A stretch of 64,000 nt of DNA. Origin: Octopus bimaculoides. Its lineage: Eukaryota. A program made the translations under genes and the position numbers. Positions 444 through 58,677 of this stretch are shown here, one piece after another. The notes beneath the pieces were generated by a model. The model was not told the DNA's origin, ran no database searches, and saw nothing but the letters and a program-made list of their open reading frames with translations. The number at the start of each line of letters is the position of its first letter. The first letter of the stretch is position 1. The stretch covers positions 50,168,671-50,232,670 of the forward strand of contig NC_068998.1 of the NCBI RefSeq assembly GCF_001194135.2, given 5' to 3'.

Positions 444-3400
444 GAGTATCTTTCTCAAGACGCTGCGACGAACTGGCAAAACGACATTGCGCAGTGAAAT
501 ACGAGGCATATCGACGTTATGACCCCGACTGTACGTATGTATCATCGTATTTCCACGTTTAGATTTACAAACTGTAGATTGTTCCTGTAACTATGTATGT
601 ATATNNNNNNNNNNNNNNNNNNNNNNNNNNNNNNNNNNNNNNNNNNNNNNNNNNNNNNNNNNNNNNNNNNNNNNNNNNNNNNNNNNNNNNNNNNNNNNNN
701 NNNNNNNNNNNNNNNNNNNNNNNNNNNNNNNNNNNNNNNNNNNNNNNNNNNNNNNNNNNNNNNNNNNNNNNNNNNNNNNNNNNNNNNNNNNNNNNNNNNN
801 NNNNNNNNNNNNNNNNNNNNNNNNNNNNNNNNNNNNNNNNNNNNNNNNNNNNNNNNNNNNNNNNNNNNNNNNNNNNNNNNNNNNNNNNNNNNNNNNNNNN
901 NNNNNNNNNNNNNNNNNNNNNNNNNNNNNNNNNNNNNNNNNNNNNNNNNNNNNNNNNNNNNNNNNNNNNNNNNNNNNNNNNNNNNNNNNNNNNNNNNNNN
1001 NNNNNNNNNNNNNNNNNNNNNNNNNNNNNNNNNNNNNNNNNNNNNNNNNNNNNNNNNNNNTATATATATATATATATATATATATATCCTTTGTTATATA
1101 TATGTATATCCCGTGTTATAAACAAGCTGAAACCACTTTTCATGCGTAGCGTCCAATACTATATGAACTCATCACGAAGCGTGAGTTATTTTCCGTCATT
1201 TAAAGATTTTATGCATTCGAAGAACAGATATTCCTTATTAGTAACATCGTTTTAGTTCACAAATTAGGGCGTATATCAAGTACAAGACAATATATCGCGA
1301 AATTACTTACTCCATATTTAAATAACCGTCAAAATGATTATGATGAGAGTTTCGTTAACGCATACTTTAATGTCCAACACAGTTTATGTATTTTATAACT
1401 GTTATTAACATGAAAGGTTAATTCACTCTATTCGTTCGCCTTAAAGGCATACAATCATTAATTAAGCTTTTTGTTGAAGGCAAAAAGTCTATAATTTGTG
1501 TGAGTGTGGTCTCCCAGTACAAAGACTCCAGTGCTCAACTGTATTTCTTTTATCGTCTCGAAAAAGAATAAACAAAGCGTCGACCTCAGCACCATATGAA
1601 CTTAGAACGTAAACACGGATAGAATCGCGATAAGCATTTTGTCTATATTTTTACTAAAACTCTTCTCCTAAAAACATTTTGGACCAATATTCGATGTATA
1701 ATATTTGAAGTGTAATAATGTTAATAGTAAATATAAGTTTGGCACATCGTCGTTATGCAACCAAGACTTAAGTAGGCTCAATAACGCAAGAAAATCATAT
1801 CATTAATGCAGGAAATTTAGAAGTTTTTTATTTTAAATAACAGTGTCATGTTTCTTCGTTTTTCCAGAGGTTATAAAAAGTTTCTGGCATGCTTTCATGG
1901 ACAAGATGGGAAATGTTATGGATTCTTTAAATACCAGCCTAACTGTATGGTAAGGGATGTGTTTTTATTTTCACTCTAATGATGTACATTTATGACAGTG
2001 AATAATATAATACATTGCATTGTATATGCATCATTCATCGATTACACTTAGAATAGAAAACCACTTCTGACAAGCGATAAAACTAATGTTAAAAATCTAC
2101 AACTCAGTTGTACTAAATTATACAATACATAATATTCCCATTATAATTGCCATTTAGGCAATATTCGATACGAAGTCTGGCCAACCGTAATGATGCCAGA
2201 GGAACAACTTTGTGTATTTCATATTTTGGAAGAACAAATGAGGAAGCATGTTAATAGTTTGTTTTCAGTAGGGAATGTAGTAAAATAAACATTTGTTAAA
2301 GCAATCTCAATAATGGCGGTAAACATTCACTTCACATCAAATACAAACGCCAATGTTTGAGTCCTTCATAATTTACAAAACGTTTTACGATTATTTTGAT
2401 AAGATGTTGGAATGATTTGCGTGGTATATGTCTAAAACACATCACGAATGTGAATAATAACGAAGAAGATGAATTGTGTCGCCTAAATCTTTTCGGGAGA
2501 AGTGTTTTAATGAATATATATCAAAATATTTCTCTCACCAGTTTTGCAATCGATGTAAACTAAATTTTAATTAGGATACTAAATGAATGAGTTTTGTCTG
2601 TCCAAGTGATCCTTATTAATTAATGTATCAGTGTCCAATAAATCGATAAAAATACGAGAAACAATCTGTATCATTTTGATTGTGTCTTTATATTTGAAAT
2701 GACTTTAAATACGAACATTGTGCCGCTATTCAATTTACTATATATTCTCTCTCAAATTTCAGCACAGGAATACCTCAAATAAGAAAGTAATGGTATGTGA
2801 TTGTGATTTCCCCGTAAATATTACAAATATATGATAATCTTACTACAATAACCTCGGTATTCATTCCATTTAACTACAGCATGTACCAGATACGCCGGTG
2901 TGTAAAACACATAATTTGTTTAAACATAAACTAAAAAAATTACCAGTAAGGAGTGAGTCCATAATATGAATATAGGACCGAATATTGCTCACGCAATCGC
3001 GCTTAGTCGTCCTCACCATGGGTTACTTAAATAACTTCCATGTTTGCCACCTCTGACCATCACGAAAGAGTAGGACATATACATGGTTACAAGATCAACT
3101 CCATTTGTTTAAGCTTTTTTTTTATTGTATTTTAAGAATTAAATCTAAATTGTAAATTCCTAATATCATTTTACGTAGAAGATCCATTTCCTGAAGTTTT
3201 ATCAGACATTTCTTTATGGTTATTTAACCGTCCAAAAACATTGACTGTTTGCAGAGCTCAATATGATGTAATTGCTATATACCCATTACTAATTGCAGTG
3301 TTATTATGATACCATTTCAAATCAGTTTAAACACCAATCCAATGAGAAATTCCATATTACATTTGTATTAACATTTATAGTTATTTATGAATATACCAAA

Positions 3401-3864
3401 ACATGAGAGACAATTTCTTTTGTCTAGAAAATACACGAGTAATCTCACAATAGCGGAAGCTTCTCACATGAATATCGTGAAATTCTCTTCAATTTGGAAT
3501 CACTCCAGCAGCCTAACTGAGACAGCGAGAAGTGAAGTTGGCTTCGTCATGGACAGTTTTCATCTGTCATTTCTTTATGAACAAAACCTATCACGGATGT
3601 TCTCTGTAGTCATTGTTATCTCTCTGATGACTGTACTACATTGTGTTTGAATCCAATGATGTTTTACGACAAGATCGATCGCGATATAAAGTAAAGTAAC
3701 TGTAGCTAGTATTCAATGCTAAATAATATATTATAACATGTTTGCATATATATCATATCAATTTACTTTCATTAATTATATATTGTTTTCTATTCTATTG
3801 CCAGGTGACATTTCACCAAGTATTCCTTACAGTTCTTGGCGTTACATTATTAATAAAATACTGA
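444..3864 (+). CDS. Gene A (5' partial): small 6-Cys protein with hydrophobic C-terminal, GPI-like tail
   Basis: Exons 444-534, 1868-1949, 2763-2792, 3805-3864, all AG/GT with matching phases. Translation: (G)VSFSRRCDELAKRHCAVKYEAYRRYDPDCT-GYKKFLACFHGQDGKCYGFFKYQPNCM-HRNTSNKKVM-VTFHQVFLTVLGVTLLIKY*. The signal-peptide exon is presumably upstream of the window. Confidence 0.85.
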
Positions 3865-4569
3865 ATAAACAACGTGCTGAAATAATTACCTGCTTGTGTT
3901 CGGCTGTAATTCTGATTGACGTCCAGGTCCATACGTCGGAAATCTACCTTGATAATGAGAAGGATTATGGGAAAGAGTATATATGTCTCACGCATTTATG
4001 AAATTTGAAAGTCCAGCATCATCAGATTATGCTTTTGAAGACAATCGTTTGTTTAAGTGTATTTCAGTATATTTATATATACACACTAACAACGCGCACG
4101 AATATATACAGGTGAATTTCCGAAAGAATTATTTCTACCTTTCAGGAAATTACTCACGTAATAAAATGTTCAGTTAATTAGCAACAGATTTTCTTATTCT
4201 TGCGAATCTATAAAGAATGAAATTATATCACGCAAGTTCTGCGTCTTTAAACGAAGTGAACGATGATTTTCTACTTTTAAGTGATTCCGAATCATTTATG
4301 TTGAATTCAAATATGGTTTTAGTATTTGCGTATCGCGTACAGATTTTACACAAATGGTTGCCAAAGGTTTGATGAGGTTTCTTGTCATTCATTCCCCCTC
4401 TGCGGCAGTGTTTTAGATAAAAGTATGAAGAAATTAAGAGCAAATGACTAGAACACTAATAAAAACAAAACGCTATGAATATTCTATGTAAGCTTACATA
4501 TTGAATAAATATATATCTTTTATGCCCTTTCTGTGGGTTTAAATTTATTGTACTACTTTTCAAACTTCC

Positions 4570-4672
4570 TTATTTTTTATTTCCTTCCAGCTTTGAGAGT
4601 TGCATACAGTCTCTCTTCAGGGTCCGACAGTAATCCATTGTAATATTTACATTCAAATCCACTGGTACCTCT

Positions 4673-4704
<32 letters not shown>

Positions 4705-5310
4705 NNNNNNNNNNNNNNNNNNNNNNNNNNNNNNNNNNNNNNNNNNNNNNNNNNNNNNNNNNNNNNNNNNNNNNNNNNNNNNNNNNNNNNNNNNNNNNNN
4801 NNNNNNNNNNNNNNNNNNNNNNNNNNNNNNNNNNNNNNNNNNNNNNNNNNNNNNNNNNNNNNNNNNNNNNNNNNNNNNNNNNNNNNNNNNNNNNNNNNNN
4901 NNNNNNNNNNNNNNNNNNNNNNNNNNNNNNNNNNNNNNNNNNNNNNNNNNNNNNNNNTATATATATATATATATATATATATTGTATATCCTGGTGAAAT
5001 CTTTCAGCTTGCACTTCACATACATAGACCATGTTCTCCGAGAAATATTCGAGGTGCGAGTGACGAAAGTGCATTTTAACATTAAAGGTACACCCAAGCT
5101 TTTTAAACTTTTGCAACATTGTATCAACTATGACTTTGCAATTTAAACACGTATCACCAACGGCTAACCTCGGGAACTACTAAAACAAAACTATACGATG
5201 AGTTAGCAATCATGTACACAGCTTTTGAAAGTCATCTTGTCTGTCAGAGTTGCCAACGCGTATCTGATAAACAATTTTACCTGAATTTGGCTGCTATTTT
5301 ACCTTAATAT
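4570..5310 (-). mobile_element. Degenerate DNA-transposon-like remnant, interrupted by (AT)n and a gap
   Basis: Minus-strand translation gives ...HLEYFSENM...QAERFHQDI..., a decayed form of a transposon-associated 'SDEQGERFHQD' motif. Superfamily not assigned. Confidence 0.5.
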
Positions 5311-6008
5311 TAGAAAAATATAATAGTTTATACCGAACTATTTCGTTACAAAAAATAAATCAGATAATCACTAGCTATATCAATGAAGCAAATATATCAA
5401 ATGATTAGGAAAACCGTTGATTCTGTCGGTAAACAACAAGAGCAAACTAGTGACAGATTGCGACCCAGGCCCTGTCAGGCTAAGTACCTGGAGATTTAGC
5501 ATTTACAGGATCTGTCTATACAAGACTTAACATTATACTGTAAGTCTCATCTGACTTCGATTCCAGATCTAAAAACAGTAATAATTGCATAGCCTATGTC
5601 TGGACTTAAACCTAAAACTGGAAAATAGAAATGAGTAAAGGAATGAAATATTACATGCGTGTATTTATGTGTGGGTACGAGCGTTTAAGCATACCAGCTG
5701 CGTTTCGAATCCGGTGGTACACACGTGTGATTATATCCTCTCCTCTAAATAACTGTCTTGAAGCAATTAACTTGCAAATGTCACTACTGAAACTCTTCCC
5801 CTATATTAACGTTAGTTCCCTTTCTTCTACAGTGCAAGCAAATAAAATTCATATAAAATATACAATAATTCATATTATAGAATAAGCAGCTAAAAATGTC
5901 ATAATTACTAGCTTGTCCGCAACATATGTTACATATTATTTGTATCAAATAAGACAACCAGGTGACTTCTATATCAGAAACCATCAATATTGAAGAGACA
6001 AAACCAAG

Positions 6009-6310
6009 ATGAAGCTCTCTGCTTTTATTTTTGTATTGTTCATTGGTAAGTAGTTTCTTCGTGATTCTTCCATTACAAATTAATATCTCTGTGCCTTTCA
6101 ATATATTTCTCTGTGTGGCATTCGATCCGCGTAACAACCAAGTCTTATCTTCATTTAATGATGTATTTAAGTACCTATATATTTTTCCACCCTACAAATA
6201 ATCTACAGTCATTTCGTACCAAGGAGAATTGTCCATGCTTTATCAAAACAGTGATCATTCAGCACGCATGACACATATGTTTTTAACTGCTTTTCTCCCT
6301 CTCTCTATGC

Positions 6311-6380
<70 letters not shown>

Positions 6381-7202
6381 ACACATACACACACACACAC
6401 ACACACAACACACACATACATATCCAAGCAGGGTAGTAGTTACTTGAAGATTAATTATTACTTCCATGAAAGATAGAAAAGAGCAAATGAGTAGGAATTT
6501 ACAGAATAAGGTGAAAACTTCAAGGCAAGATGCGAGTAGCTTAGAAACATGCAAGCACAAGTCAGAAAGCAATAGTTAAATCTTCTCTTGAACATAATTA
6601 CCTAGGCAAAGAGAAAAGGATTTGGGATTATTATGGAAGAGTTGAAACATCGTATGATAGCAATAGCAAGTAAGCTTTTCAAACATCAGAATTGAAGAGC
6701 TAAGTATCATGGGAACAAATTGCTCTAAACAGGTCAAGGGGATATAAGAACATATTTCATTAAAAAACCAAGTTTTAATATTTCCAAAACGCCAAGCTGT
6801 AGAATTTTGCAACAGATGTAGGTTTGACTTTCTAAAACATTCCATAGTACAAGAAAATATTGCATTATATTATCTAGTTCAAAATGCAATTTTAATAAAT
6901 TATTTAATATCGTAAATCGGACAAGCAATAATGACAAAAATATTTATTTTACAGAGGTAGCTAACTCAGCATCGTGCGAAAATCTGGCAACAAAATATTG
7001 TTCATCGACATATGAGTATTATTTATCATATGACCCCAACTGTACGTACGTATCATCATATTTCTACCTCTAGATTTGCAAATACAACATCCAAACCTGT
7101 AACTATGTATATATACATACATATATATATGTGTATCAAAAATAACGGAGGAAACTGGTAAACATTTGGAGTAATCCGTCTCTATTTATACACACACACA
7201 CA

Positions 7203-7301
<99 letters not shown>

Positions 7302-9010
7302 ACATATATTCGATACAAAGGTTAACAGGGGCAGTATTTAATACAAATTCGATACATCGTTTTTTTTCAACCTGAACAAAAGCCTGTCTCAATAACGCAA
7401 GAAAATTATATTAATATGGTAGGAAATTTAGACTTTGATTTAAATAAAAGTGCCTCATTTCTTTCAGGGGTTACAGAGACTTTCTGGACTGCTTTCGTGG
7501 ACAAGATAAAGAATGTTATGAAGACTTTAAATACATGCCTAAGTGTATGGTAAGGAATGTATTTTTAATATCGGTTTAATGACATAAGTTTACGTCAATA
7601 AATAACAAAATAAATTATATTTCTTATACATCATTCTTCTATTACATTTTGAATAGATATTACTTCTGTCAAGCGATAATTCTAATGTTAACAATCTATC
7701 CATTTCAATTTTAATTAGAATATGAAAAATATTAGGTCTTTCAGTCTAAGTGTTCCTTTTTATTTAATGTATCAGTTTCCAACAAATAAATAAAGACACG
7801 AGGAAACTATCTGAATGAGTTTGCTTTTATCTTTATATTATGTGAACGATAGAATTTGATTAAATGAATATATCCCAGTGACAACTACGGCAGAAACCCC
7901 AACTCTCATTCATCGTTTTATCAATAACTAATCACACATAGAATATTACTGGAAGTTCTATAACTATCGCAGTTTGTTGAAAAATAGAACTAGATAATTC
8001 CATTCAAATAATTTAAATGCGAACTGTTTTCGACATTCATTTCACTATATATTCTGTCTCAAATATTTCAGCACAACGATGGCTCAAATAAGAAAGTGAA
8101 GGTATGTGAATTCCCAGTAAATACTACACTAATATGATAATTTTATTCCAATATCCTCCATATTATTTCCATTTTACTACAGCATTTACCAGGTACACTG
8201 GTGTGTAAAATGCATATAATTTCTTTAGATGTGAACTACAAAAGTGAACTGTAAGACGTGAGACCATAACATGAAGATAAAGACCGAATACAGCTCGCAC
8301 GTTACCCGTATAAGTTTTAACGGTAAGGAACTTCAAAAAAGCTGCAATATGGCATTGTCACTAACGACCAACCCAAGCTATGTCAGCAGTTATATGGAGA
8401 AATTACATGATCTCTTTATACTTTCTTCTCTAACATATGGAAACTACATATGACGTCATATTATTCTTTACACAAATGAAACCATCTCTCAAAAGTGGAA
8501 GATGAAAAAGACGTTAAACTATAATTTAGAGCGTATTTGCAGTGAGTAGATAACAAGAAAGGCATTGTTTTGAAACTCTTACCTATTTGCTGCTCGATAA
8601 CCTCGAATTTTACATCCGTGCATGTCAGTTATGTTAAGTAAAATATAGACAATTACGCAGTTGATAAGAAAATGATAAAACTGCGACATGGTGCCCGTAT
8701 AACTTATGGTTCCATATATATTTCTAGTATATAATCACATATGAAAACAATCTACCACGGACTGCTCTCTGTTGCCATTGTTATCTTTTTCATTGCTGTA
8801 ATACATTATATGTTTGTGAAACCAATGTTTTTTCAACAAAAACTGTCGCCATAATTATGTATTCAATTCTAAACAACATATAATAAAATGTTTGCAAAAT
8901 CACATCAAATTACTTTCATTAATTATATATTTGTTTTGTTCTATTTGCAGGTAACATTTCAACAAGTATTTCTTACAGCACTTGGGGTTATTTTATTAAT
9001 AAAATACTGA
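6009..9010 (+). CDS. Gene B: 99-aa signal peptide + 6-Cys domain + linker + GPI-like tail
   Basis: Exons 6009-6045, 6955-7045, 7468-7549, 8072-8101, 8951-9010. MKLSAFIFVLFIE-VANSASCENLATKYCSSTYEYYLSYDPNCT-GYRDFLDCFRGQDKECYEDFKYMPKCM-HNDGSNKKVK-VTFQQVFLTALGVILLIKY*. Canonical splice sites, phases 1/2/0/0, no internal stops. Confidence 0.9.
6311..6420. repeat. (CA)n microsatellite, representative of dozens of (CA)n, (AT)n, (CT)n, (ATT)n and (ATC)n tracts
   Basis: Directly visible. Others include 7190-7305, 13215-13310, 16470-16590, 40015-40070, 41490-41583, 46268-46350, 52657-52803 and 62465-62785. Most N-gaps are flanked by (AT)n. Confidence 0.95.
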
Positions 9011-10411: not shown

Positions 10412-12195
10412 CCTTACTTGTAAATATATGACAAAATTGCCTGCTAGTAAAGATCCCGTGATGCACACAGAACAATGAATGTTGTCTGCTAGGGAGCCCG
10501 GAAAATAGTTGTAATAATAAAGTATTGAAAGTTAGCTGCAATATCACCTTGTGCTATCCGAAATTTAAGAGAAATTGCTCTTGCTCCCCCGGTAGTTAAG
10601 AACAGGTCACATCACATGATTATATCTCTTTCTCCAGCATATATAATCTACCCCTGGTATTTCTCTTACATTATTTAATGTTCGTATTATCTTCAAGCAG
10701 TATATTTTTGTTAACTCTCCTATTGAAAATTCTCTGCGAAAGCTGAAAAATATTTACACGATCATTTATCAGATATTCGCCATCGGAGGATATATATGGA
10801 GAGCTTCTGTGGGTTTCCTACTCTGGAACAACCTACATACGTATGAAACTAAATGTAGAATGAGACGTAATCCAAACACATAAATTCAAGGTGAATTTGA
10901 AAGCATTATAAGTCTAGGTCCCGCACGCCCACAAAAAGAGAAAGATATATTGAGATAAATACATGGAAGTTCCAAGGAGTTGCGCACTTGTGTCATAAGT
11001 TTGTTCTATAGCACTCACCAATTTCATTACCACTGCGTGGCGCCGAAGCTTCTATATTTGCCATGGAACTGTAAGACAATATATATTTAACAGCATATCG
11101 TTAAATGCAAAGTTCTTTTGATTTTCTTCCTGCAAAGATTATGATGTCGATGTAGGGTAGATATAATTGTATTTAAAAAAAAAAAAACAAGTGTAATCTA
11201 TTTTCTGCAATTCTAGACAAAATATCACCACGGAATGAGGGAAATCTAATGGCAACACATTAAGCTGTAAGTTCATCAGCATCAATCACAATGAATAAAA
11301 GAGTACCAATAGCATAATTGATGTATGACTGCAATCCGAAGATTGAAATTATAAATTAATGAATGAAAGGACGAAAACATTTACATGTCGCATTTCTACA
11401 AGGGAAATGAATGCGTTGAGAGTATATTCTTTGGTTTTGTTTATTGTCATATATCCTGCCAGTTACATGAGTTATTAGACAATCTTTTCCTCTATGCTAA
11501 CATTTCTCCCATTTCTTCTTCTAAAGGATGCAAAGATTTAGCTGAGAAATATCTCATAACTCATCATGTAGCATATGCAATTATAAATGTCATATTTATC
11601 ATCCTTATGTCCGACATATGTTACATTATATTTTATGTCTGAAGAGAACAAGATGACTATTTAAACACACTTCACCGAATTTGAATACACAAGACCAAGA
11701 TAGATCTTTCTGCATTGATTTTAGTTCCCGTATTTGGTTAGTAGTTACACATGGAAAACTTCCTGAAGTCAAACGGAGGCAGTGAATAAAGCCCATTTCA
11801 AGGTAACATTAAAAGAGTGAGGAGTAATTCAGGGAACTATCTTAGTGCAGCTGTTTTTCGTGGCCGCACTCCCGGACATGCTGTTTGTCTCAGAGAGACA
11901 GGCACTCTTACATGCCAGTGACACAATAGTAGCACCTGCAATCAAGAATCTTCTCAGTGTTATTCATCCACTGAAAGATGTAAAGGTCATAGGTAAAGGA
12001 GCTGGGTAAAACAACAGGCAATGTAATGCATGAATATTCCAAGGGTCCCACTATGCGTTGTAATATGGGTATGTGACAATAATCCCAGAACCAAGCGCAA
12101 TGTTAGACGTGGAAACTGATATGTAGTTTCACGTGGAAACTACATACTCAATCTTTTATCAGCAGGTGATTAACATCTGTGTACCGTGAAGAAGT

Positions 12196-14077: not shown

Positions 14078-15375
14078 NNNNNNNNNNNNNNNNNNNNNNN
14101 NNNNNNNNNNNNNNNNNNNNNNNNNNNNNNNNNNNNNNNNNNNNNNNNNNNNNNNNNNNNNNNNNNNNNNNNNNNNNNNNNNNNNNNNNNNNNNNNNNNN
14201 NNNNNNNNNNNNNNNNNNNNNNNNNNNNNNNNNNNNNNNNNNNNNNNNNNNNNNNNNNNNNNNNNNNNNNNNNNNNNNNNNNNNNNNNNNNNNNNNNNNN
14301 NNNNNNNNNNNNNNNNNNNNNNNNNNNNNNNNNNNNNNNNNNNNNNNNNNNNNNNNNNNNNNNNNNNNNNNNNNNNNNNNNNNNNNNNNNNNNNNNNNNN
14401 NNNNNNNNNNNNNNNNNNNNNNNNNNNNNNNNNNNNNNNNNNNNNNNNNNNNNNNNNNNNNNNNNNNNNNNNNNNNNNNNNNNNNNNNNNNNNNNNNNNN
14501 NNNNNNNNNNNNNNNNNNNNNNNNNNNNNNNNNNNNNNNNNNNNNNNNNNNNNNNNNNNNNNNNNNNNNNNNNNNNNNNNNNNNNNNNNNNNNNNNNNNN
14601 NNNNNNNNNNNNNNNNNNNNNNNNNNNNNNNNNNNNNNNNNNNNNNNNNNNNNNNNNNNNNNNNNNNNNNNNNNNNNNNNNNNNNNNNNNNNNNNNNNNN
14701 NNNNNNNNNNNNNNNNNNNNNNNNNNNNNNNNNNNNNNNNNNNNNNNNNNNNNNNNNNNNNNNNNNNNNNNNNNNNNNNNNNNNNNNNNNNNNNNNNNNN
14801 NNNNNNNNNNNNNNNNNNNNNNNNNNNNNNNNNNNNNNNNNNNNNNNNNNNNNNNNNNNNNNNNNTATATATATATAAGGTTCTCCAATCAGCATTCACG
14901 TATTTATTTAATTTCTCTTTCTGTGTGGTCTTATTGATGATGCTACTCTACCGAAGGTGGACCCATTTTGCTATCCTGAAGCACAATCTGCTTTCGGACG
15001 AAGAGCAAGCATTCAAATTTACGTTTATCAAGCCCTCTACGTACTCAAACTGATTGGTCTTAGTACTGAACCCTTTATCGGCGCCATATCAGAGAAAGTA
15101 TCCTTCGTCTCACGCGGAAGGACAATGTGCCTCACACCAAAATCCTTTTGAGATCTGGGATCTACAACCGGATGGCGTTTCAATATTGCATGAAAAGAGA
15201 TGGTCATTTAATATGACATAAATATCATTAATATAGAGATGCATACAATTGTATGTCATACAATACATCAAACTTTATAGTCCTGTTATGTTGGCCGACA
15301 TCTCTGAGAATGCTTTGTCACTGAATTTAGTAAAGTATCGTTCAGAGAACATATTAACTTTTACTGAAAAGAAAC

Positions 15376-16501
15376 ATGAAATTTTTCGTCATCCCTTTCT
15401 ACCTTATTCATGGTAAGTATTCATATTATTTTTTTTATCGAAGAAAATATTCCAAATGATGAAATATATGTTACCTTATTTCTCTTTTTCGCTTTATCCT
15501 CTCGCACTCACCCTCTTTATATGTATTTACAGACGCATATACATATATGTCTGTGTGTAACATAATATATACGATTATATATACACGACGGGCTTCTTTC
15601 AGGTTCCGTCTCCCAAATCTACTCACAATGCCTCGCTCGGCTCGAGGATACAACAGTAGTCTCTCTCCGGGCGGATCGAACTCAGAACAATGCGGTAGGG
15701 ATGCAAGCTAATATATATATATATATATATATATANNNNNNNNNNNNNNNNNNNNNNNNNNNNNNNNNNNNNNNNNNNNNNNNNNNNNNNNNNNNNNNNN
15801 NNNNNNNNNNNNNNNNNNNNNNNNNNNNNNNNNNNNNNNNAGTATATACATACATACATACATATATATATATATGTATGTATGTATGTATATACTCATT
15901 TAATTCGGGAAAGTCAAAACCTCCTTAGGAATTATGGACTCCAAGGTATCCCACTGGTTTAATCTCTATCATACAATAAGGCATTGGTATATCTTTAGGA
16001 TTATTGAAATTTTCAATATTGAGGGAAAACGAGAAGAAAATGAAGAATAAATGGATGTAATTGCTGATGTATTTGCGTGTTATAAAAAGATGGCTATTTT
16101 CTTAAAGAATGTTATCTTATCTTTATGAATAACCACAACTAAAATTGACATCATTAATGTATGTAATATTGAAATAAACACTGACTTACCTGGAATATAC
16201 TCAGATATAAATACTGGAAAGAAATTACCAGAAGCCCCTATGTGCCAATACAAAATCAAAAGTAATTTTAAAATTTTAGGTGTGGAGGTGAACGAGACTC
16301 AGTGTCCTCATTTAGCAAAGACAGGCTGTGGTTTCTCCACTGGGCCTCTACGTACTTGCGAAGATAATATAAAGTTATGCAGGTAACTACCCGTGCACTA
16401 TATTACCACTCAGTATCTATTATTCCCTTCTCGTTGTCTATTGTTGTATATCTCCCTCTATTGCTTTCTCACACACACACGCGCACACACACACACACAC
16501 A

Positions 16502-20984: not shown

Positions 20985-21820
20985 ATGATGAAACTTATAT
21001 TTATATATCTTCTTCTCATTGGTATGTAGTCACAGCAAAATAATTTTCTTGTTATATGTCTGGGCAACGATATATCGATAACACTGAGTAACGGGATTTT
21101 TGATATTGAGTTACAACTTTTATTTCCTGTATGCATTCCCTTAGAAAGTATCAAATATGGCTATTTCCTTAAAGGTTCTTTTGTTACGTTTATTCAAAAC
21201 CCTCTCCACACATGGCTCTAATGCTTCCCCACGCCACTTGCTCATGACCAGATATGCACATAGTTTCAGGCACCGAGGTAGATATGCTGTAATGAATTAT
21301 AAATGTCAATCAAATGACAATTTAAAATATGTTACTTAGCAGAATAGATCTGTGTCTCGTTTAAGCGAAAACATTGTGTTAGAAAAACACTGCCTTGATT
21401 TTGTAGTAATAAATAGGAGGTACTTATGCAAAATATACCTGGACAACTTTATAATCACTAATGTCATATAGTTTAGAGAATGATTTTTAAACGTATTTAT
21501 TCAGTGTATGAAAAATGACATGCTAATTTCCAATTTGTAGGTGAAGTACTTAGCAACGATAGGTGCGTCAGATTAGCGAGAAAATTTTGCAAACGTTACT
21601 ATGTGGAGTATGAAAAAAATAGCCTCATGTGCAAGTAAGTATAACATTTCTACAATGAAAGCTATTAGAAAATGTATGTATGTATGTATGTATATATATA
21701 TATATATGTGTGTGTGTGCGTGTGTGTGTGTGTGTTTGTGTGCATGTGTGTGTTTGTGTGTGTGTGTGAGTGTACGTTGACGCACGTATGTTAGCGAGTG
21801 TAAGTATACACACTCTTATG

Positions 21821-21852
<32 letters not shown>

Positions 21853-24710
21853 ACATCCATAGGTGTATATTTATAAAAATATATCGGCATATAATTTATG
21901 CGCAAGTATAAGCACGTGCCTACAGATGTATATGTGTGCGTCTATGTGTCTCTGTGTGTCTGTGTGTATGTGTGTCTGTGTATGTGTGTCTGTGTATGTC
22001 CGTGTGTCTGTGTATGTGTTTACGTATTTATATAATGTCTGTAAATATACACACACGCAAATGTACGAGGGGAAATTTAGCATTATCCGCACTTTCTTCA
22101 TAACATATCTTTATTATTGTCACATTGTCTACTGCGCATGTGTGCTCATAGTAAGTACTATTGTAGACACGTGATCGATTTCAGAGCGTGATCACGCCAT
22201 TTTTCTCTCTGGTTTTACAGTGTAAGCATGGACGCTCCACTAACAATGTGCCCCTAAGAAGAACAACAGCAGTTATCCGATTTGTCTGTTGCTGAAATAT
22301 ATTAGAGGCTTTTAGCTCAATATGGGCATAGTACAGTACCGCGTAGAGTGTGTATGAGTGGATCGAGAAATTTAAAAGTGGGCGCAAAAGTGTGACGCAC
22401 GAACAGGGAGAATAACGCCCGCCGACTTCTACAACTGACGAGAAGATTCAGCAAACCCGAGAGTTTGTAATGGTGAACCTGCGAGGTATTATCGATGAGG
22501 TGGCTCGTTCACTGAAAATTCGTCATGGTTTTACTGGAAGACTAACTGAAAAAAGTGTGTACGATCAACAGTGCAAGATACATTGCTTTGCAGAGGCCAG
22601 CCATTTGCACTAAAAGCCGAACTCTATGTCGAAAGCATTTTGTTGTTGCGCGGCAATACACGAAATTTCTATATTTTGCTGAGGCCTACAACGATTTCAG
22701 TATCAAAAGCATGTAAAAGGTAGAGACAATAGTATGTTACCAACTTGTCAAAATACACACTTTAAGGTATTTTTCATACGAATTATGAGACTGTTGTTAT
22801 CTGAAGCTGTAGTGAAATTGTATTTGCTACGCCGTTTATATCATTATAATACAGCGTTTGTAAACAAACCAGAAAAGTTCCTTGTCATTTACGGAGAGTA
22901 AGCTACTATGGAAGAATCGTAGTATAATATTAAACAATTATTATTATACTATGACTCTTCCATAGTAGCTTTCTCTCTGTACCTTACAAAGCCTTTGTGA
23001 ATTATTTACAAATATTATATGTAGCATTAGACAGTTTAAGTATATATTCAATGAATTTGCCTGAAATCGATGGTTGGACGTTTGGTCCAATCGGATCCGC
23101 GAGGAGCCATTTTAGTGATGGGTTCGATTCTTACTAGGTTTAGTCCACCTTTTTTCGGTCATTTATTTTGTATTTATAAATTGTCGCTTCAAATCAGAGA
23201 ATATATATATTAATATACGGTTATCTGTCTCATGAAAACGTTTGAGGATAATTTTTTTTTTTTTTGTTTTTCAGGAGTTACAAAGATTTTCTTGATTGTT
23301 TTCTTTTACATGATGATATTTGTTATGAAAACTTTAAAACCATGCACAAGTGTTCCGTAAGTTATTTATTATTAAAGTTTTGTTGGAGGTCGAGTATATG
23401 ACATAGAATTAAAGAAACCAGATGTATGAAATCTCTGTCTTTTTTTTTTTTTGATGTTTTGTTGAAATCAGGCATCAACAACAGAAAGGCCACATTAAAA
23501 ACGTCCCCAGTTTTCTATGCTAATATTGTTAACATCTTTATTTTCAAATTAGCACGAAAGACCGATAGATTATTTAGTCAAAAAGGCAGGTGTCTCTGCT
23601 AGGCATTCTACAAGCATTATTAATCCAACTAATGAAGCTCTTTCGAAAATAGTTAATTAACTAATAATAATGAAAACGATTAGCCCCCGCTCTCAAAATT
23701 TCAATCACCGTGCCTTAAGATTAGTGCATTGTTATTATCCTTATGATTAATATTGCATCTGCTAATTATGTTTTACATTATATTGCGTCATTAATTAATA
23801 TATGACATAACATAACGGCTGTTTCATGAGGCGTTGTGTTTACATACTTTACATACATTATCACTAATCACAAAGTGTATATTACTAGCAATGTTATAAT
23901 TGTGTATGCTGAAATCCAGGTTAAATTCATAGACTTGTACTTGTGACGATATACCGAATACAAATTTGTTTCAGATTTATACTTTAACGAGATATTACGT
24001 TTTTATTTTAGCATCCGGCAGAACATGAATCTAGTAGCAAAGATAAGGTACGTGATTTCATCGCAATTGCTAGATCAGCACTTTAACTGCAGTATCAATG
24101 ATAACGTTTGTATTTACACCTGCATAAATAGTGTAACATAACTGCTTAGTATATTATACACAGAATATCATTGCATTACTGATTATTATTCTTTGAAATA
24201 TTTGATAAACCATCTAATAACTTCCCTAGCGTATTATGACAACATAAACATATCCATTAGTGCTTGTAGTAATATTATTAACCACTGCGAAGCTATTACA
24301 ATAGCAGTCCTAGGGGAAACTCGGAATCAATGTGATGCATGCACCTTATGGTAATTGTCACAAACATATATGCAGCAACACATGTAGAATTTTCATAACA
24401 TTATTAGAACACGACAGGTAAACATTTGTTAATCAAATGTGCACATATGGTCAATTTTATTTCATCATTTATTACGTAGGGGCAAAAGTTTTGTTCCACT
24501 AGCTACAGCGTGGAATTTGTCACTCTTTAACACATTTAGTTTTAAAATACGATTTCAGAACAAATGTCTTACTCTGGAAATACATTTCATAAATATACTT
24601 TCCTTGAACATGTATTAAAGTCTTCTACAGTTTTTCTGTTCTCGTTACAGGCGAAATATGGATCAGTAATCATTACTGCATTTGTAGGTATATTTTTCAT
24701 GCATAACTGA
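20985..24710 (+). CDS. Gene D: 102-aa 6-Cys GPI-like protein
   Basis: Exons 20985-21021, 21541-21634, 23275-23356, 24012-24047, 24651-24710. MMKLIFIYLLLIG-EVLSNDRCVRLARKFCKRYYVEYEKNSLMCK-SYKDFLDCFLLHDDICYENFKTMHKCS-HPAEHESSSKDK-AKYGSVIITAFVGIFFMHN*. AATAAA at 24838. Confidence 0.9.
22064..22545 (+). mobile_element. Tc1/mariner remnant (5' end and HTH region) in gene D intron 2
   Basis: Starts TACGAGGG. Encodes VYEWIEKFKSGRKSVTHEQGE*RPPTSTTDEKIQQTREFV...IIDEVARSL, like a mariner transposase N-terminus. Confidence 0.7.
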
Positions 24711-25879: not shown

Positions 25880-26234
25880 TATAACTTATTCCTTTTAACA
25901 ATGCAATTCTTCTGCCTTATTAGTAGCAAATAGTTCTTCACACAGATTTATATTAATACACAGAAAAAAACACATATATGTACATGTATGTGTATATAAC
26001 TTATTCCTTTTAACAATGTAATTCTTCTGCCTTATTAGTAGCAAATAGTTCTTCACACAGATTTATATTAATACACAGAAAAAAACACATATATGTACAT
26101 GTATGTGTATATAACTTATTCCTTTTAACAATGCAATTCTTCTGCCTTATTAGTAGCAAATAGTTCTTCACACAGATTTATATTAATACACAGAAAAAAA
26201 CACATATATGTACATGTATGTGTATATAACTTAT
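25880..26234. repeat. 115-bp tandem repeat, 3 near-identical copies plus a short partial
   Basis: TATAACTTAT starts at 25880, 25995, 26110 and 26225. I found one substitution among the copies. Confidence 0.9.
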
Positions 26235-30552: not shown

Positions 30553-30863
30553 ATGAGAATCCTTATTCTACTTTCATTTGTTCTTCTCTTTGGTATGTAG
30601 AAACAGGAAAACTATTTCCTTTTTTATGTCTGATATATCGGTAATTTTCGTATATGATATTATAATATTACATATTATATATTGATAATATTCGTATGTC
30701 TCTTCATCAACATGTCTTGCAAGCTCTCAATGACATGATCATTTTATTGTAAATTTATATCTAAGCCTCTATATTTTTTATCTATCAGTTTATCTCACAC
30801 ATTTATTTAGACACCTACAGTTTGAATATATACTTCTCATTTTATATATTTCACACACAGTTA

Positions 30864-30919
<56 letters not shown>

Positions 30920-33900
30920 GCGTAAAACTAATACAGTTGCTTCTTGTTACTACACCTGTCTTCCTATTTTGATTTCAGTGATTTCTCACACTATATATAT
31001 ATATATACGTGTGTGTGTGTGTGTGTGTGTATCAGGAAAATAAGAAAATGCTAAAATAATTTTATCATGAAGTACATTTTACTACCGGTTTCAGTCTTTA
31101 CGTACTAAATAAGGCTAAGTGTTGTGCAGAGCGTACCAATTGTTTCGCCAACTCACTGCTTTCATCAATTTCATCAAAATCTTCCTGCTGATGAATATAA
31201 TCTAAATGTCATTTACGAATATCCATAACAACTTACTAGAAAACAAACCCTGCCTGTTATAGACTGAAAAGCTTATAACTAGCGTAGCACGACATCGGTT
31301 CCTCTCTACTCCAAGCTAAAACCAAGCGACAGAACAACACCATGGATACAATAGCAAAACAATGAAACAATTTTTCAAATATGTTTGGACCGAATTATAA
31401 TGCCTTACTTTAATTTGTTCACAAAGTAGTTTCTAAATGTCATTTATTCAGTATATAAAAATACGCCAGTCAAAACACTGCAATTTCTAACTTATAGCTG
31501 AAGCAGCCATGAAGAATAAATGCTTTAAATTAGAGACGCCAAGATGCAATGCTCTGTACCAGCACTATCTGAGCAATGAAGACACATGCAAGTATGTATA
31601 ATAATTAGATAATAACATAGTGCTTCTATAGCTACTGGATTGTTTTGTCTTATTTCTAGCAAAACTGGTTCTGATTCTTGTTCATTTTAGTGAGGTATAT
31701 ATGTTTGCCTGTAGGTTGTAGACTTGCGAATTAGCCACCAATACCATATATATGTGTTTGTGTGTGTGGTATTTGTGTGTGTGTGCGTGTGTTAATGTGT
31801 ATGCTTATACACACACTTACATACATTACATAAACACATATATACATATACATAGAAACATGTGTGTGTCATGCCTCTGTGTGTCTAAATGTACTTCAGA
31901 AACAAAAGAGGTTTGTTACTTAGTACTACAAAAGAAAGGTGCTAGAAGTAGCGCCAATCTTTACAGATTTATTACTGCATAGATTTGTTCAATTAAATCA
32001 AGTAAGGCCATGCTGTAGCATGGCCGCATTGCAATGTCTGTATATATGATTCATATATTTATAAATGATTTAGTAAACGTTGATCGTGATAATGCTTAAG
32101 GGTATTATGTAACATCCTAGGTGTTGGGCAATCGCCTCACTATTCCTAAATGATGATTTTGAAGGAATGTTCATGGTATTACTGACTCTACAACAGAGTG
32201 TGACTATCAAAAATATTTCTGCATTTTCACACGATGTCTATAATGCTTTACAATGCACACTAATTATATTTTTATGAATATTGCACCAGTACCACTTCCA
32301 AATGCACAAGCTGTTAATATCAAAAATATCACCCCACATCAACAACTCGTGAAAATTCAGAAGGACATAAAAATACGCTGTGAGGTACGTGTAATTGTGA
32401 TGAAATAATTGGTGGCGTAAAATAGAGGAAAATAAAAAGAAAATTAAAATTATCCAGCTAGAAATGAATGCGTGGGTTAGCGGAACATACATTCTACGTT
32501 ACGAAATTTGTTCGTACATAATTCTTGATACATTAGCGAGGCGTCTAAGTTGAGTAGCTATGTTAGTATTGGGGCTGGTCATATGTATAGAACGAAGCCC
32601 AAATTTCAACGAACAGAGATGTGTTTTAGCTATGAAATAAATGTGAGACTTATGCCCGTCATAAAAAAAAAAGGAATTATATGCGGACAATCACGGGGAA
32701 AAGAAAATATGAATAAGTAAGTTATGTTTGGGGGACATCATGCATGCCAAAGTATGCTAGCTCTGTCATGAACATCGTTGTGTAGGCTAGGCATACATCT
32801 GGTTATCTGCGATATAGAAATGTCCAGCCTCCGAATTCTAATGAACATCCCAAGAGTTCCACTATCATTTGCCAGTGAGTAAGCTGGAGTTACTAAATCC
32901 AAATTCCGTAAATTAGTTTTTTGTGGCAAAACATTTCGATTTCAGACCATGTTTTGAGACTAAAACGATTCCATTGGGGATAACGTACGTTAACCATTCT
33001 GAAGCACAGAAAAAGATTATTTACGTCATTTAAACATTTATTGCGTATAATATGTTGTCGAAACCTAGTCTCTGATAACGTTACAGTGAAATGTTTTAAT
33101 AATGCAAGTATTTGATTCTTCGTTTTTCTTTATTTTTTTAAATCTATTCGATAAATATTTGAGGACGGTTTTCTGTTTTTCAGAGATTACGTTGAATTCC
33201 TTCGTTGCATTGATTTAGATGACAAAACCTGTAAGGAAAAGTATAAGGTTATGCACGCATGTATCGTGAGTTAATTATTATTCTATATTTGTTGGGAGAC
33301 GAGAATATCAGAGAGTTAATCAATACAGGATATATCATATTTCTATCGTTTGTTGATTTTTATTTCAATTTAGACTGGCCTTTGTCAAAGAAATGCCACA
33401 CTTCGATGGTGGAAGCAGCGTAGGTTTTGAATTTGTGCTGCATCGCTTCAACCTTTTCCAATATTGCTAATATACATATTTCCAAATAAGCACCAAAGAC
33501 CGATAGAAGAATGGGTCAAACTGGATGATATATTTGTTACATATTCCAAGGCCATTGTTAGTCAAACTCATGAAGGACGTAGGAAAATGATTAATGATTA
33601 ATGCAAAGAAGAAAGTACTAGTAGACTAATACAGGTTAGTGTTCCCACTGACGTAGGAAAATATTATTCATTAACGAAGAGTAATCATACTTGTGACATA
33701 CACGATATATTTTAGAAAATATTCCGAAGATATAACATCTTCTCTCGTTGATTTTCCAATCAATTTAAACTGAGCTTCAACAAAACTCCATCCACTGCCG
33801 GAGTTGACGTCAACCATCCACATTCTGAGAAAGCCTCTCTCCATATAATAGACCCCTTGGGTCTCTGACTGAGACGCGGTGAGACGATGAAATGAAATGC

Positions 33901-37698: not shown

Positions 37699-37997
37699 AC
37701 GAGACAACGTATTCTAATTATATTTCTTCTCATTGGTATGTAGAAAGAGGAAGATTATTTCTTCTTTATATGTTTGGTATATCGCTATTCGTATATTATA
37801 TCATAGTATCATAACTTATACATTGATAATATTCGTGTTAATATCGCTCTATCAAAATATCGTGCAAGCTTTCAATCAGTCTAACATTGTATTCTAAATT
37901 TATACTTATGACTCCATGTTGTTTATCTCACAATATATCTGCATATATATATATATGTGTGTGTGTGTGTATGTGTGTGTGTGTGTGTGTGCGTTTC

Positions 37998-38048
<51 letters not shown>

Positions 38049-38631
38049 NNNNNNNNNNNNNNNNNNNNNNNNNNNNNNNNNNNNNNNNNNNNNNNNNNNN
38101 NNNNNNNNNNNNNNNNNNNNNNNNNNNNNNNNNNNNNNNNNNNNNNNNNNNNNNNNNNNNNNNNNNNNNNNNNNNNNNNNNNNNNNNNNNNNNNNNNNNN
38201 NNNNNNNNNNNNNNNNNNNNNNNNNNNNNNNNNNNNNNNNNNNNNNNNNNNNNNNNNNNNNNNNNNNNNNNNNNNNNNNNNNNNNNNNNNNNNNNNNNNN
38301 NNNNNNNNNNNNNNNNNNNNNNNNNNNNNNNNNNNNNNNNNNNNNNNNNNNNNNNNNNNNNNNNNNNNNNNNNNNNNNNNNNNNNNNNNNNNNNNNNNNN
38401 NNNNNNNNNNNNNNNNNNNNNNNNNNNNNNNNNNNNNNNNNNNNNNNNNNNNNNNNNNNNNNNNNNNNNNNNNNNNNNNNNNNNNNNNNNNNNNNNNNNN
38501 NNNNNNNNNNNNNNNNNNNNNNNNNNNNNNNNNNNNNNNNNNNNNNNNNNNNNNNNNNNNNNNNNNTATATATATAATATATATCAAGATTTAGTTTTTC
38601 ATAATAGTATATAGAAATATGTGTGTGTGGC

Positions 38632-38663
<32 letters not shown>

Positions 38664-39483: not shown

Positions 39484-39527
<44 letters not shown>

Positions 39528-40011: not shown

Positions 40012-40073
<62 letters not shown>

Positions 40074-41498: not shown

Positions 41499-41556
<58 letters not shown>

Positions 41557-48200: not shown

Positions 48201-58677
<10,477 letters not shown>

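Follow-up and report, generated by a model that had tools for sequence, protein, structure and literature searches.

Divergence of cysteine-rich exons and neighbouring non-coding DNA in a tandem gene array of Octopus bimaculoides

The 64,000-nucleotide stretch of Octopus bimaculoides DNA analysed here (the window) opens with two neighbouring genes, A and B, encoding small cysteine-rich proteins. According to an earlier note, their cysteine exons have diverged faster than the introns between them, in the manner of conotoxins. The locus raises the question of whether these exons really outpace non-coding DNA and, if so, whether selection favouring diversity is responsible.

The gene array and its products

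Seven same-strand copies (A–G) and one relic were found in the window, and an eighth copy lies just upstream; those in the window are all on the forward strand. Each gene has five short exons, coding for the signal peptide (exon 1), the Cys domain (exons 2 and 3), a linker (exon 4), and the tail (exon 5). Gene A (LOC128249945) starts 817–853 nt upstream of the window with exon 1 (L001 10001–10037) and continues with exon 2 (444–534; first half of the Cys domain, Cys1–3), exon 3 (1868–1949; second half, Cys4–6), exon 4 (2763–2792; the Ser/Asn-rich linker HRNTSNKKVM), and the tail exon (3805–3864; hydrophobic C-terminus and stop codon). The spliced product is identical to RefSeq XP_052830547.1 (P0003), and an alternative exon 4 donor at 2813 gives isoform X1. 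In the splice model of gene B, the exon order is the same: exon 1 at 6009–6045 (signal peptide MKLSAFIFVLFI), exon 2 at 6955–7045 (Cys1–3), exon 3 at 7468–7549 (Cys4–6), exon 4 at 8072–8101 (linker HNDGSNKKVK), and the tail exon with the stop codon at 8951–9010. B is intact though unannotated, with an open reading frame of 99 aa and no assembly gap in its gene body; no protein matching it was present in the protein collection searched.

The relic is an exon 1 at 11700–11736, in which ATG is changed to ATA and the donor reads GTTAGT; it resembles exon 1 of B and the DNA upstream of it. Gene C (LOC128249946, 20985–24710) has exons at 20985–21021, 21541–21634, 23275–23356, 24012–24047, and 24651–24710 and encodes XP_052830548.1 (P0001). 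Gene D (LOC128249940, 30553–35232), with exons at 30553–30592, 31498–31591, 33184–33265, 34535–34570, and 35173–35232, encodes XP_052830537.1 (P0002). Copy E (37699–42719) consists of exon-like blocks at 37699–37735, 39096–39165, 41014–41095, and 42660–42719. It is probably a pseudogene: ACG replaces ATG in the first block, the second is 24 nt shorter, and E is absent from the annotated proteins and without a match in the protein collection searched. Gene F (LOC128249829, 48201–58677; XP_052830331.1, P0005) carries three copies of exon 4 (54370–54405, 55909–55941, and 57393–57425) besides the exons at 48201–48240, 49371–49470, 52053–52134, and 58609–58677. Only the 5' part of G (LOC128249830, 61328–63437; exons 61328–61367 and 63338–63437) lies in the window, the remainder being outside it; its product here is the N-terminus of XP_052830332.1 (P0018). 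At every residue, the splice models agree with five RefSeq proteins labelled 'uncharacterized' (those of A, C, D, and F, and the N-terminus of that of G).

We found 29 representatives of this family, all from Octopus except one repetitive ENA protein of 663 aa (P0009). Its proteins, of approximately 100 aa and labelled 'uncharacterised', group at 50% identity into no fewer than 27 clusters, almost all of them on a single 55.6-Mb chromosome; the family is Octopus-restricted and undescribed. The Cys domain is helical, about 57 residues long, and contains six invariant cysteines, three in each of exons 2 and 3. Exon 4 encodes a short Ser/Asn-rich linker and exon 5 a hydrophobic C-terminus of 12–15 residues. 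Among 24 aligned members, positions C20, C28, C42, F48, C51, C59, and C69 were invariant, and each of the 24 had a cluster of S/N/G residues and, after it, a hydrophobic end. AlphaFold2 predicted helices at 19–36, 43–52, and 57–64 (pLDDT of this block 89–96), with the linker disordered and a further helix at the terminus. No Pfam hit above threshold was obtained for the family, and Foldseek returned no PDB match for the predicted models. Taken together, these elements resemble a GPI-attachment signal, and a small protein anchored on the cell exterior is therefore the most likely product. From the sequences we infer that the variable sites are surface-exposed.

Divergence of genes A and B

The hand counts of the earlier note proved exact throughout on recounting. 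Exon 2 differs at 32 of 91 nt (64.8% identity), with 16 of the 29 whole codons replaced and a synonymous change in two of 13 conserved residues; exon 3 differs at 18 of 82 nt (78.0% identity; 10 replacements, 2 synonymous changes) and the tail at 8 of 60 nt (86.7% identity; three of each kind). Exon 1 differs at 9 of 37 nt. The intron sample used in that note, the first 37 nt 3' of exon 2 (31 identical, 83.8%), adjoins the splice site and is unrepresentative of introns. Over 2,162–2,294 alignable columns, non-coding divergence was 21.5–21.6%, a neutral benchmark that may be too low if the non-coding stretches that align are under slight constraint or are preferentially picked by BLAST; the promoter and intron 1 added 984 columns with 21.3% divergence (21.5% over about 3,100 columns in total). 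Exon 2, which was singled out post hoc for its divergent look, exceeded this level (35.2%; Fisher p = 0.0026), and 32 differences were not reached in any of the 1,438 91-column windows of non-coding DNA (maximum 31, mean 19.7). Exon 3 (22.0%) was no different from intron DNA (p = 0.51), and the tail (13.3%) was below non-coding divergence. The claim that the Cys exons outpace the introns thus stands, in this pair, for exon 2 but not for exon 3.

Approximately half of introns 2–4 could not be aligned between A and B: z-scores against shuffled sequences were −0.3 to 1.5, compared to 22 for a control block. These parts reflect indel turnover, that is, absence of homology rather than high substitution, and they are the reason why forced global alignments of whole introns gave 54–77% identity. 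A contrast produced by alignment bias, wrong exon models, or misassembly near runs of N would have some footing here, as BLAST HSPs prefer the better-conserved non-coding stretches, introns were aligned with gaps and exons without, and two assembly gaps lie in the A–B region. One (605–1060) is in intron 2 of A, between exons 2 and 3, and the other (4705–4957) is in the intergenic spacer, both with (TA)n on either side. Both gaps are, however, non-coding and are not crossed by any exon or reading frame; none of the exons of B has a counterpart within the gap at 605–1060; and the public record CM046618.1 contains both gaps and is identical to the window on either side of them. Together with the reproduction of five RefSeq proteins, the gap-free alignment of the exons, and the recurrence of the contrast in independent paralog pairs, this leaves an artefact hardly credible.

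In codon-based tests on A and B, Nei–Gojobori dN/dS of the Cys domain was 0.96 (exon 2, 0.98; exon 3, 1.13), and the maximum-likelihood (GY94) omega of 1.19–1.35 showed no departure from 1 (LRT p = 0.5–0.7). Compared with non-coding divergence, dN was higher in exon 2 (pN 0.343 vs. 0.216, p = 0.011), with p = 0.06 for the whole domain and p = 0.6 for exon 3. The earlier note had proposed diversifying selection between A and B, to be abandoned at a dN/dS of 1 or below; with values of 0.96–1.35, not separable from 1, this pair does not sustain it. Only exon 2 shows an excess, which is no more than suggestive, and the pair by itself is no proof of positive selection. Another part of that proposal, conservation of the cysteines and the anchor, was borne out: none of the six cysteines has been lost, and purifying selection acts on the tail (omega 0.10–0.17, p = 0.005–0.02). 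The sites at which A and B differ are those that vary among family members (entropy 2.99 vs. 2.01 bits, p = 0.004), and the Cys domain carries a net charge of +5 in A and of −3 in B.

A higher local mutation rate in the Cys exons, or clustered multi-nucleotide mutations, would raise dN and dS together. In exon 2, pS (0.35) is indeed as high as pN, dS is raised in several family pairs, and changes are clustered within codons. The exon 2 value, however, derives from about 7 changes in 20 sites (p = 0.17 against non-coding DNA) and from a method, NG86, that over-counts synonymous steps where codons differ at two or three positions; at conserved codons, synonymous difference was 0.231 vs. 0.216 for non-coding DNA, and ML dS was 0.30–0.32 vs. 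a non-coding K of 0.25. Moreover, the excess ends at the exon borders, being absent from exon 1 and the tail, and non-coding triplets, subject to the same mutational clustering, have half the multi-hit rate (13.0% vs. 14 of 57 codons, 24.6%; p = 0.013). We consider a mutational cause very improbable.

Nor did gene conversion, a possibility raised in the earlier note, explain the similarity of the A and B introns. No conversion tracts were found between the two genes, the longest identical run being 27 nt (permutation P = 0.18); 100-column non-coding bins showed no heterogeneity (chi-square p = 0.12); divergence was even over six blocks (0.19–0.26); and the agreement of synonymous with non-coding divergence points the same way.

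Tests for selection across the family

In six other pairs (D–E, D–F, E–F, C–D, C–E, and D–G), the Cys exons differ by 35–52% and non-coding DNA by 22–30%. Exon 1 diverges in family pairs about as much as non-coding DNA does, and the tail equally or less in A–B and in the D/E/F pairs. The D–E pair had dN of 0.71–0.73, dS of 0.23–0.24, and a non-coding K of 0.29 (omega about 3), with pN above non-coding p (p = 3e-5). Exon 3 alone exceeded non-coding DNA in D–E (p = 0.002), D–F (p = 0.004), and E–F (p = 3e-8). The fast Cys exons are a real pattern, and one of an ordinary kind.

Comparison of M7 with M8 across paralogs, as the earlier note had suggested, was significant: for six taxa, 2dlnL was 21.9, along with 17.8 for M1a/M2a and 17.1 for M8a/M8, in our own implementation of the codon models (not PAML), which is without recombination or multi-nucleotide mutation, both of which inflate such tests. 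Seven taxa gave 21.6 (M1a/M2a) and 20.4. About 40–45% of sites were assigned an omega of 3.5–4 across the family, on a tree that is saturated (about 11–14 substitutions per codon).

Relaxed constraint alone would let the non-scaffold sites drift at omega = 1 under constrained cysteines and tail, the A–B exon 2 result being sampling noise. The A–B omega, the equality of exon 3 with intron DNA, the domain-wide p = 0.06, and the post hoc choice of exon 2 all agree with this, as do the lack of a protein matching B in the collection and the pseudogene-like state of E. Drift, however, cannot lift dN above the neutral level, as is seen in A–B exon 2 and in D–E, where dN is about 2.5 times K with dS matching K; multi-hit codons also exceed the non-coding triplet rate. 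Relaxed constraint corresponds exactly to M1a, which was rejected with seven taxa, without E (14.5), and with A, B, Z, and C only (7.8, p = 0.02); in 55 parametric bootstrap replicates under M1a, the maximum LRT was 5.48, none exceeding 5.5. We regard this explanation as rather unlikely.

Homogenised introns and flanks (gene conversion or unequal crossing-over) or swapped exons would make the Cys exons older, not faster. Pairs containing C or F show features of this kind: Cys-exon dS is 0.5–1.2 vs. a non-coding K of 0.27–0.36, that is, 2–3 times higher, and synonymous difference at conserved codons reaches 0.7–0.9. The DNA flanking exon 2 of F could not be aligned with that of D, unlike the regions of exon 1, exon 3, and the tail, and D, E, and F are mutually equidistant in non-coding DNA (0.225–0.238). 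Given the high dS and the unalignable flanks, some of the exon excess in the C and F pairs may reflect mosaic history or homogenised flanks and not selection. As a general account, homogenisation is improbable: A–B non-coding divergence is uniform, synonymous sites match non-coding DNA in A–B and D–E, and no near-identical tracts were found between any two copies in the window.

The other paralogs, but not the A–B pair, support selection favouring diversity, and we favour, with moderate confidence, birth-and-death duplication combined with diversifying selection on a binding surface in a putatively anchored Cys-rich family. A and B are adjacent members of a large tandem array of this Octopus-restricted family, in which, after each duplication, purifying selection would keep the tail and a scaffold of the six cysteines with A24, Y32, Y45, F48, and F63, which recur in the helices with i/i+3/i+4 spacing. 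At other helix and loop positions, amino acids would be replaced as fast as under neutrality or faster, through diversifying selection on a binding surface; the arms race suggested in the earlier note is a putative driver of it.

Likeness to known systems

In snake-venom PLA2 and mammalian beta-defensins, exon divergence equals or exceeds that of introns. These proteins and Mytilus MgCRP-I (PMC4558851) share with the octopus family tandem duplication, a conserved leader, and a hypervariable six-cysteine mature region, but are secreted effectors without sequence or Pfam relationship to it; the octopus proteins have an anchor-like tail and are helical, not beta-rich. For Conus conotoxin superfamilies, the published account (PMC3862624) describes introns conserved within a superfamily and a mature-peptide exon holding most substitutions and positively selected sites. 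Both groups consist of tandemly expanded small Cys-rich genes with short exons, fixed cysteines, and otherwise fast residues. Conotoxins, however, are soluble venom peptides of signal–pro–mature layout with the hypervariable part in the last exon, whereas the octopus family has its variable domain in exons 2–3, no evident propeptide, and a conserved hydrophobic last exon, and in A–B only one of two Cys exons exceeds intron divergence. The description 'conotoxin-like' fits the evolutionary pattern but not the protein, which has an anchor-like tail, no propeptide, and nothing tying it to venom.

The octopus family also resembles Ly6/uPAR proteins in its small disulfide-rich modules, tandem clusters, and rapid divergence. 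Ly6/uPAR proteins are GPI-anchored modulators of surface receptors with a beta-rich three-finger fold and 8–10 cysteines; the octopus proteins, whose GPI anchor is putative, have six, are predicted by AlphaFold2 to be all-helical, and lack a Pfam match. Neuritin (PF15056) and the RGM N-terminal domain (PF06535) are, like the octopus family, small Cys-rich helical modules with a signal peptide. Neuritin and RGM are GPI-anchored neuronal proteins. Outer-cysteine spacing differs, and vertebrates have a conserved, single-copy neuritin whereas the octopus family is a fast-evolving array. All share a central C-x8-C-x7-C core with an aromatic-x2-F/W motif: the sub-threshold Pfam matches of four family members all fell on the neuritin/RGM core (10–16 bits vs. 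cut-offs of 24–27), and hhalign paired octopus C..Y..F..C with neuritin C.YW..FH.C (probability 5%, P = 0.0076).

Divergence of genes A and B in exons and non-coding DNA

Genes A and B, the first two of the seven paralogs in the window (A–G), are collinear and both lie on the + strand. The exons of A are at 444–534, 1868–1949, 2763–2792, and 3805–3864, its first exon being upstream of the window; those of B, at 6009–6045, 6955–7045, 7468–7549, 8072–8101, and 8951–9010, encode an intact 99-aa protein. Exon 1 encodes the signal peptide, exons 2 and 3 the six-cysteine domain, exon 4 a linker, and exon 5 the tail. From this pair, the earlier note had claimed that the Cys exons outpace their introns, in a conotoxin-like pattern of diversifying selection. 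Its counts of differing nucleotides were exact on recount (32/91 in exon 2, 18/82 in exon 3, and 8/60 in the tail), and its tallies of replacement and synonymous changes in these exons and the identity of the 37 intron nt directly downstream of exon 2 (31/37) also matched ours. Exon 4 differed at 7/30 nt.

Since the 37-nt intron sample adjoins a splice site, non-coding divergence was remeasured on wider DNA. Collinear BLAST blocks yielded p = 0.215–0.216 (JC 0.254) over 2,162–2,294 aligned columns, with a range of 0.19–0.26 among blocks, and the promoter together with intron 1 yielded p = 0.213 over another 984 columns. Exon 2 exceeded this benchmark (p = 0.352; Fisher p = 0.0026), and its 32 differences surpassed the maximum of 31 seen in 1,438 windows of non-coding DNA, each 91 columns long. 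Exons 3 and 4 were at the benchmark (p = 0.220 and 0.233, respectively), and the tail was below it (p = 0.133). Faster divergence of Cys exons than of introns thus holds for exon 2 of this pair and fails for exon 3.

About half of introns 2–4 could not be aligned between A and B (z from −0.3 to 1.5, vs. 22 in a control block). These parts, which retain no homology, reflect indel turnover and not saturation, and the same turnover explains the 54–77% identity of forced whole-intron MAFFT alignments, which were rejected as a measure of substitution because the unaligned halves are non-homologous. Intron conservation related to RNA editing was set aside, as non-coding identity was uniform (~78%) over 3 kb and was not concentrated near exons. 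Two gaps, both inside (TA)n, fall in the region: one in intron 2 of A (605–1060) and one in the A–B spacer (4705–4957). No reading frame crosses either gap, and the RefSeq protein of A is spliced over the first one as in the gene model. The gene body of B is gap-free with the exon order of A. The sole cost of the gap at 605–1060 is that the bulk of intron 2 of A is lost to comparison.

Pairwise dN/dS in the Cys domain was not significantly above 1 for A and B. Nei-Gojobori estimates were 0.96 for the domain, 0.98 for exon 2, 1.13 for exon 3, and 0.15 for the tail; maximum likelihood omega (GY94) was 1.19–1.35 for the domain (LRT against 1, p = 0.5–0.7) and 0.10–0.17 for the tail (p = 0.005–0.02). 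Synonymous divergence agreed with that of the non-coding DNA (ML dS 0.30–0.32 vs. 0.25; difference at conserved codons 0.231 vs. 0.216), which indicates that, relative to the introns, the exons are not older and do not mutate more readily. The similarity of the A and B introns is not due to gene conversion: no conversion tracts were detected between the two genes, either by a run test in the style of GENECONV (longest identical run 27 nt, P = 0.18) or by a test for heterogeneity among bins (homogeneous, p = 0.12). Replacement differences, set against non-coding DNA, gave p = 0.011 in exon 2 and p = 0.6 in exon 3; over the domain as a whole, p was 0.06. Codons differing at two or three positions made up 24.6%, vs. 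13.0% of non-coding triplets (p = 0.013), and changes had occurred on both lineages (12 vs. 10 derived states). The pair combines a constrained scaffold and tail with other positions that change at about the neutral rate, exon 2, singled out post hoc from this comparison, being possibly somewhat above it. Taken alone, A and B are suggestive of positive selection and do not prove it; the dN/dS values do not bear out diversifying selection as read from this pair only.

In net charge, the mature Cys domains of A (+5) and B (−3) are 8 units apart; the other copies range from 0 to +4.

Replacement excess across the array

The window contains five further paralogs, C–G, with the exon structure of A and B. 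Non-coding p and Cys-exon p were 0.238 and 0.35–0.39 for D–E, 0.225 and 0.39 (exon 3) for D–F, 0.229 and 0.52 (exon 3) for E–F, 0.285 and 0.40–0.48 for C–D, 0.297 and 0.39–0.48 for C–E, and 0.241 and 0.36 (exon 2) for D–G. In these six pairs, exon 1 followed non-coding divergence. The tail was below it in the pairs among D, E, and F; in those with C, the tail was similar or slightly more divergent. For D–E, dS was 0.23, close to the non-coding K of 0.29, and dN was 0.71–0.73. The replacement excess over non-coding DNA was significant in all tested pairs other than A–B (p from 5e-4 to 8e-15), with dS sometimes also raised, and was significant for exon 3 alone in D, E, and F, the flanks of which are clearly homologous.

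Codon site models, run in our own F3x4 implementation without terms for recombination or multi-nucleotide mutation, rejected the nearly-neutral model across the paralogs. With six taxa, 2dlnL was 17.8 for M1a/M2a, 21.9 for M7/M8, and 17.1 for M8a/M8; with seven taxa, it was 21.6 for M1a/M2a and 20.4 for M8a/M8. For M1a/M2a, it was 14.5 when the probable pseudogene E was left out and 7.8 (p = 0.02) for A, B, C, and the upstream paralog Z only. About 40–49% of sites had omega of 3.5–4. Among 55 data sets simulated under the M1a null with the same saturated tree length, the maximum LRT was 5.48. The site-model comparison proposed in the earlier note thus came out in favor of selection at the level of the family.

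Pairs that include C or F had a synonymous divergence 2–3 times non-coding K. The exon 2 region of F (49371–49470 with flanks) could not be aligned with that of D (31498–31591); the regions of exon 1, exon 3, and the tail could. Together, these observations suggest mosaic or recombinant histories in the array, and some mosaicism or flank homogenisation is suspected in that part of it. For the array as a whole, the signal of diversifying selection is credible.

Protein architecture and relation to known families

In an alignment of 24 members, C20, C28, C42, F48, C51, C59, and C69 were invariant, and A24, Y32, Y45, and F63, with i/i+3/i+4 spacing, were near-fixed. AlphaFold2 on this alignment predicted helices at 19–36, 43–52, and 57–64 (pLDDT 89–96 per block), followed by a disordered linker and, at the end, a hydrophobic helix. 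Variability showed weak helical periodicity (p = 0.04–0.17), so that the variable positions are only presumed to be exposed. All 24 aligned members had an N-terminal signal peptide, a hydrophobic C-terminus, and no cytoplasmic domain. In every member the C-terminus comprised an S/N/G cluster, a spacer of ~10 residues, and 12–15 hydrophobic residues, with 10–15 of the last 15 residues being hydrophobic or small; that of A reads ..NTSNKKVMVTFHQ-VFLTVLGVTLLIKY. Judged from the sequence, this is a putative GPI-attachment signal.

Pfam searches with A and B gave no hit at E≤10, and the family corresponds to no Pfam family. Four members had sub-threshold matches to RGM_N or neuritin, all at the C-x8-C-x7-C core; the best scores, 14.8 bits for NRN1 (PF15056; cut-off 27) and 15.6 bits for RGM_N (PF06535; cut-off 24.2), were below the Pfam gathering scores. 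In a 29-column hhalign alignment, the same core was matched to neuritin at P = 0.0076, yet at a probability of 5%. A sequence profile search of PDB gave chance-level matches only (best E 0.41, an unrelated CHCH protein). Foldseek with both AlphaFold2 models, searched at full length with leader and tail and hence at low sensitivity, found no match in PDB at E≤10, solved neuritin and RGM members included. Neuritin and RGM are GPI-anchored neuronal proteins. The resemblance is an inconclusive lead, and we leave the octopus family outside neuritin/RGM_N. It seems rather improbable to us that the array encodes an Octopus-specific expansion of neuritin/RGM-N-like, GPI-anchored three-helix modules, with a surface diversity that was selected as a code for cell-surface recognition or receptor modulation in the nervous or chemotactile system; if it does, the array would represent a protein family not recognised before and a parallel to the octopus protocadherin expansion.

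Snake PLA2 and beta-defensins show the same evolutionary pattern as conotoxin genes. In the latter, according to PMC3862624, cysteines are fixed and the Cys-rich part of tandem duplicates diverges at least as much as introns; the octopus array resembles them, as described there, in its constant cysteines, its conserved leader and tail, and the divergence of its Cys part, at least equal to that of introns. In Mytilus MgCRP-I, a conserved pre-pro region precedes a hypervariable six-cysteine peptide (PMC4558851). The protein layout is different: conotoxins have a signal-propeptide-mature organization in which the last exon encodes the C-terminal, hypervariable Cys-rich peptide, whereas the octopus family has its Cys domain in exons 2–3, a conserved hydrophobic tail in the last exon, and no evident propeptide. 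"Conotoxin-like" is therefore apt for the mode of evolution and not for the protein. Identity with conotoxins was rejected because of this layout, the membrane-anchor-like tail, and the octopus origin.

The evolutionary pattern itself is a further example of that of toxins, defensins, and reproductive proteins and not a new principle. What is new is an undescribed, Octopus-restricted gene family that follows it; our literature searches found no account of this family. Cephalopod genomes contain large lineage-specific tandem arrays with mostly uncharacterised functions. The present array is compact and easily modelled, with HMMER detection limited to Octopus and no Pfam or PDB relative, and its sequences point to a clear division between a fixed scaffold with a putative anchor and a fast-changing surface. 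Should orthologue and population data bear out the selection, the family would be a tractable candidate for a role in octopus-specific recognition, be it neural, chemosensory, immune, or reproductive, and the weak neuritin/RGM-N likeness would become a concrete structural hypothesis.

Gene array, annotation, and assembly

The window consists of AT-rich eukaryotic sequence with GT-AG introns, numerous microsatellites, and 14 N gaps; no tRNA-derived elements or long transposon ORFs were found in it. The CM046618.1 locus (GCA_001194135.2) is identical to the window sequence, gaps included, and provided exon 1 of A, MNLSIFIFILFF. A regex-based search for cysteine patterns was drowned by (CA)n/(TG)n translations. 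An HMMER profile built from the window paralogs retrieved 29 hits among 1.84 billion representative proteins, several of them residue-for-residue products of our gene models. By exact look-up, A, C, D, F, and G are LOC128249945, LOC128249946, LOC128249940, LOC128249829, and LOC128249830 of Octopus bimaculoides, respectively; RefSeq labels all family members "uncharacterized". Nearly all remaining hits lie on the same 55.6-Mb chromosome, and a few two-domain relatives belong to O. vulgaris and O. sinensis. A word-indexed homology search matched A to itself only, with no close orthologue protein, and gave no match for B. As no protein in this 5.8-billion-sequence collection shares the 5-residue words of B, this gene appears to be absent from the RefSeq annotation. 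Its 99-aa ORF (6009–9010) is unbroken with canonical splice sites, and its promoter and flanks are ~78% identical to those of A.

The array extends past the window, as paralog Z lies about 6.4–7.4 kb upstream of its start (3437–4502 in the upstream genomic record L001), with exon 2 ...LCDTLGQSFCPLEYKGFRDPDPGC and exon 3 GLLHFLRCFKEIDKKCYKYFSYVPSCW. A B-like relic of exon 1 at 11700–11742 has ATA for ATG and a GTTAGT donor; matching downstream exons were not found for it, but there are gaps at 14078–14865 and 15736–15840. Copy E (37699–42719), unannotated, has ACG at the position of the start ATG and an exon 2 shorter by 24 nt, with eight residues lost between Cys2 and Cys3; it retains the tail and all six cysteines and is probably a pseudogene. 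A nucleotide search for exon 4 of C–F gave no result, and these exons were placed later via RefSeq proteins. In gene F, a block of ~1.5 kb is present in three tandem copies (53801–57775, ~69% identical), each bearing an exon 4 (54370–54405, 55909–55941, and 57393–57425), which accounts for the 130-aa product and its longer linker.

Gene A has isoforms of 99 aa and 106 aa. RefSeq isoform X1 uses a donor 21 nt further downstream (2793–2813), which adds VCDCDFP and so two further cysteines; an in-frame 15-nt counterpart in B (VCEFP) lies at 8102–8116 and is followed by GTAAAT. Downstream of gene C, 25880–26234 consists of 3.1 copies (99% identity) of a 115-bp unit. The intron between exons 3 and 4 of gene D contains a 64-nt inverted repeat (33588–33651/34360–34423, 98% identity), possibly marking the termini of a small mobile element. 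Runs of (TA)n or (CA)n border the gaps at 605, 4705, 14078, 29273, 36499, 38049, 39250, and 61917, and a trinucleotide repeat borders the gap at 52848, which indicates that repeat arrays interrupted the assembly. The stretch 62467–62785 is a long (AG)n tract.
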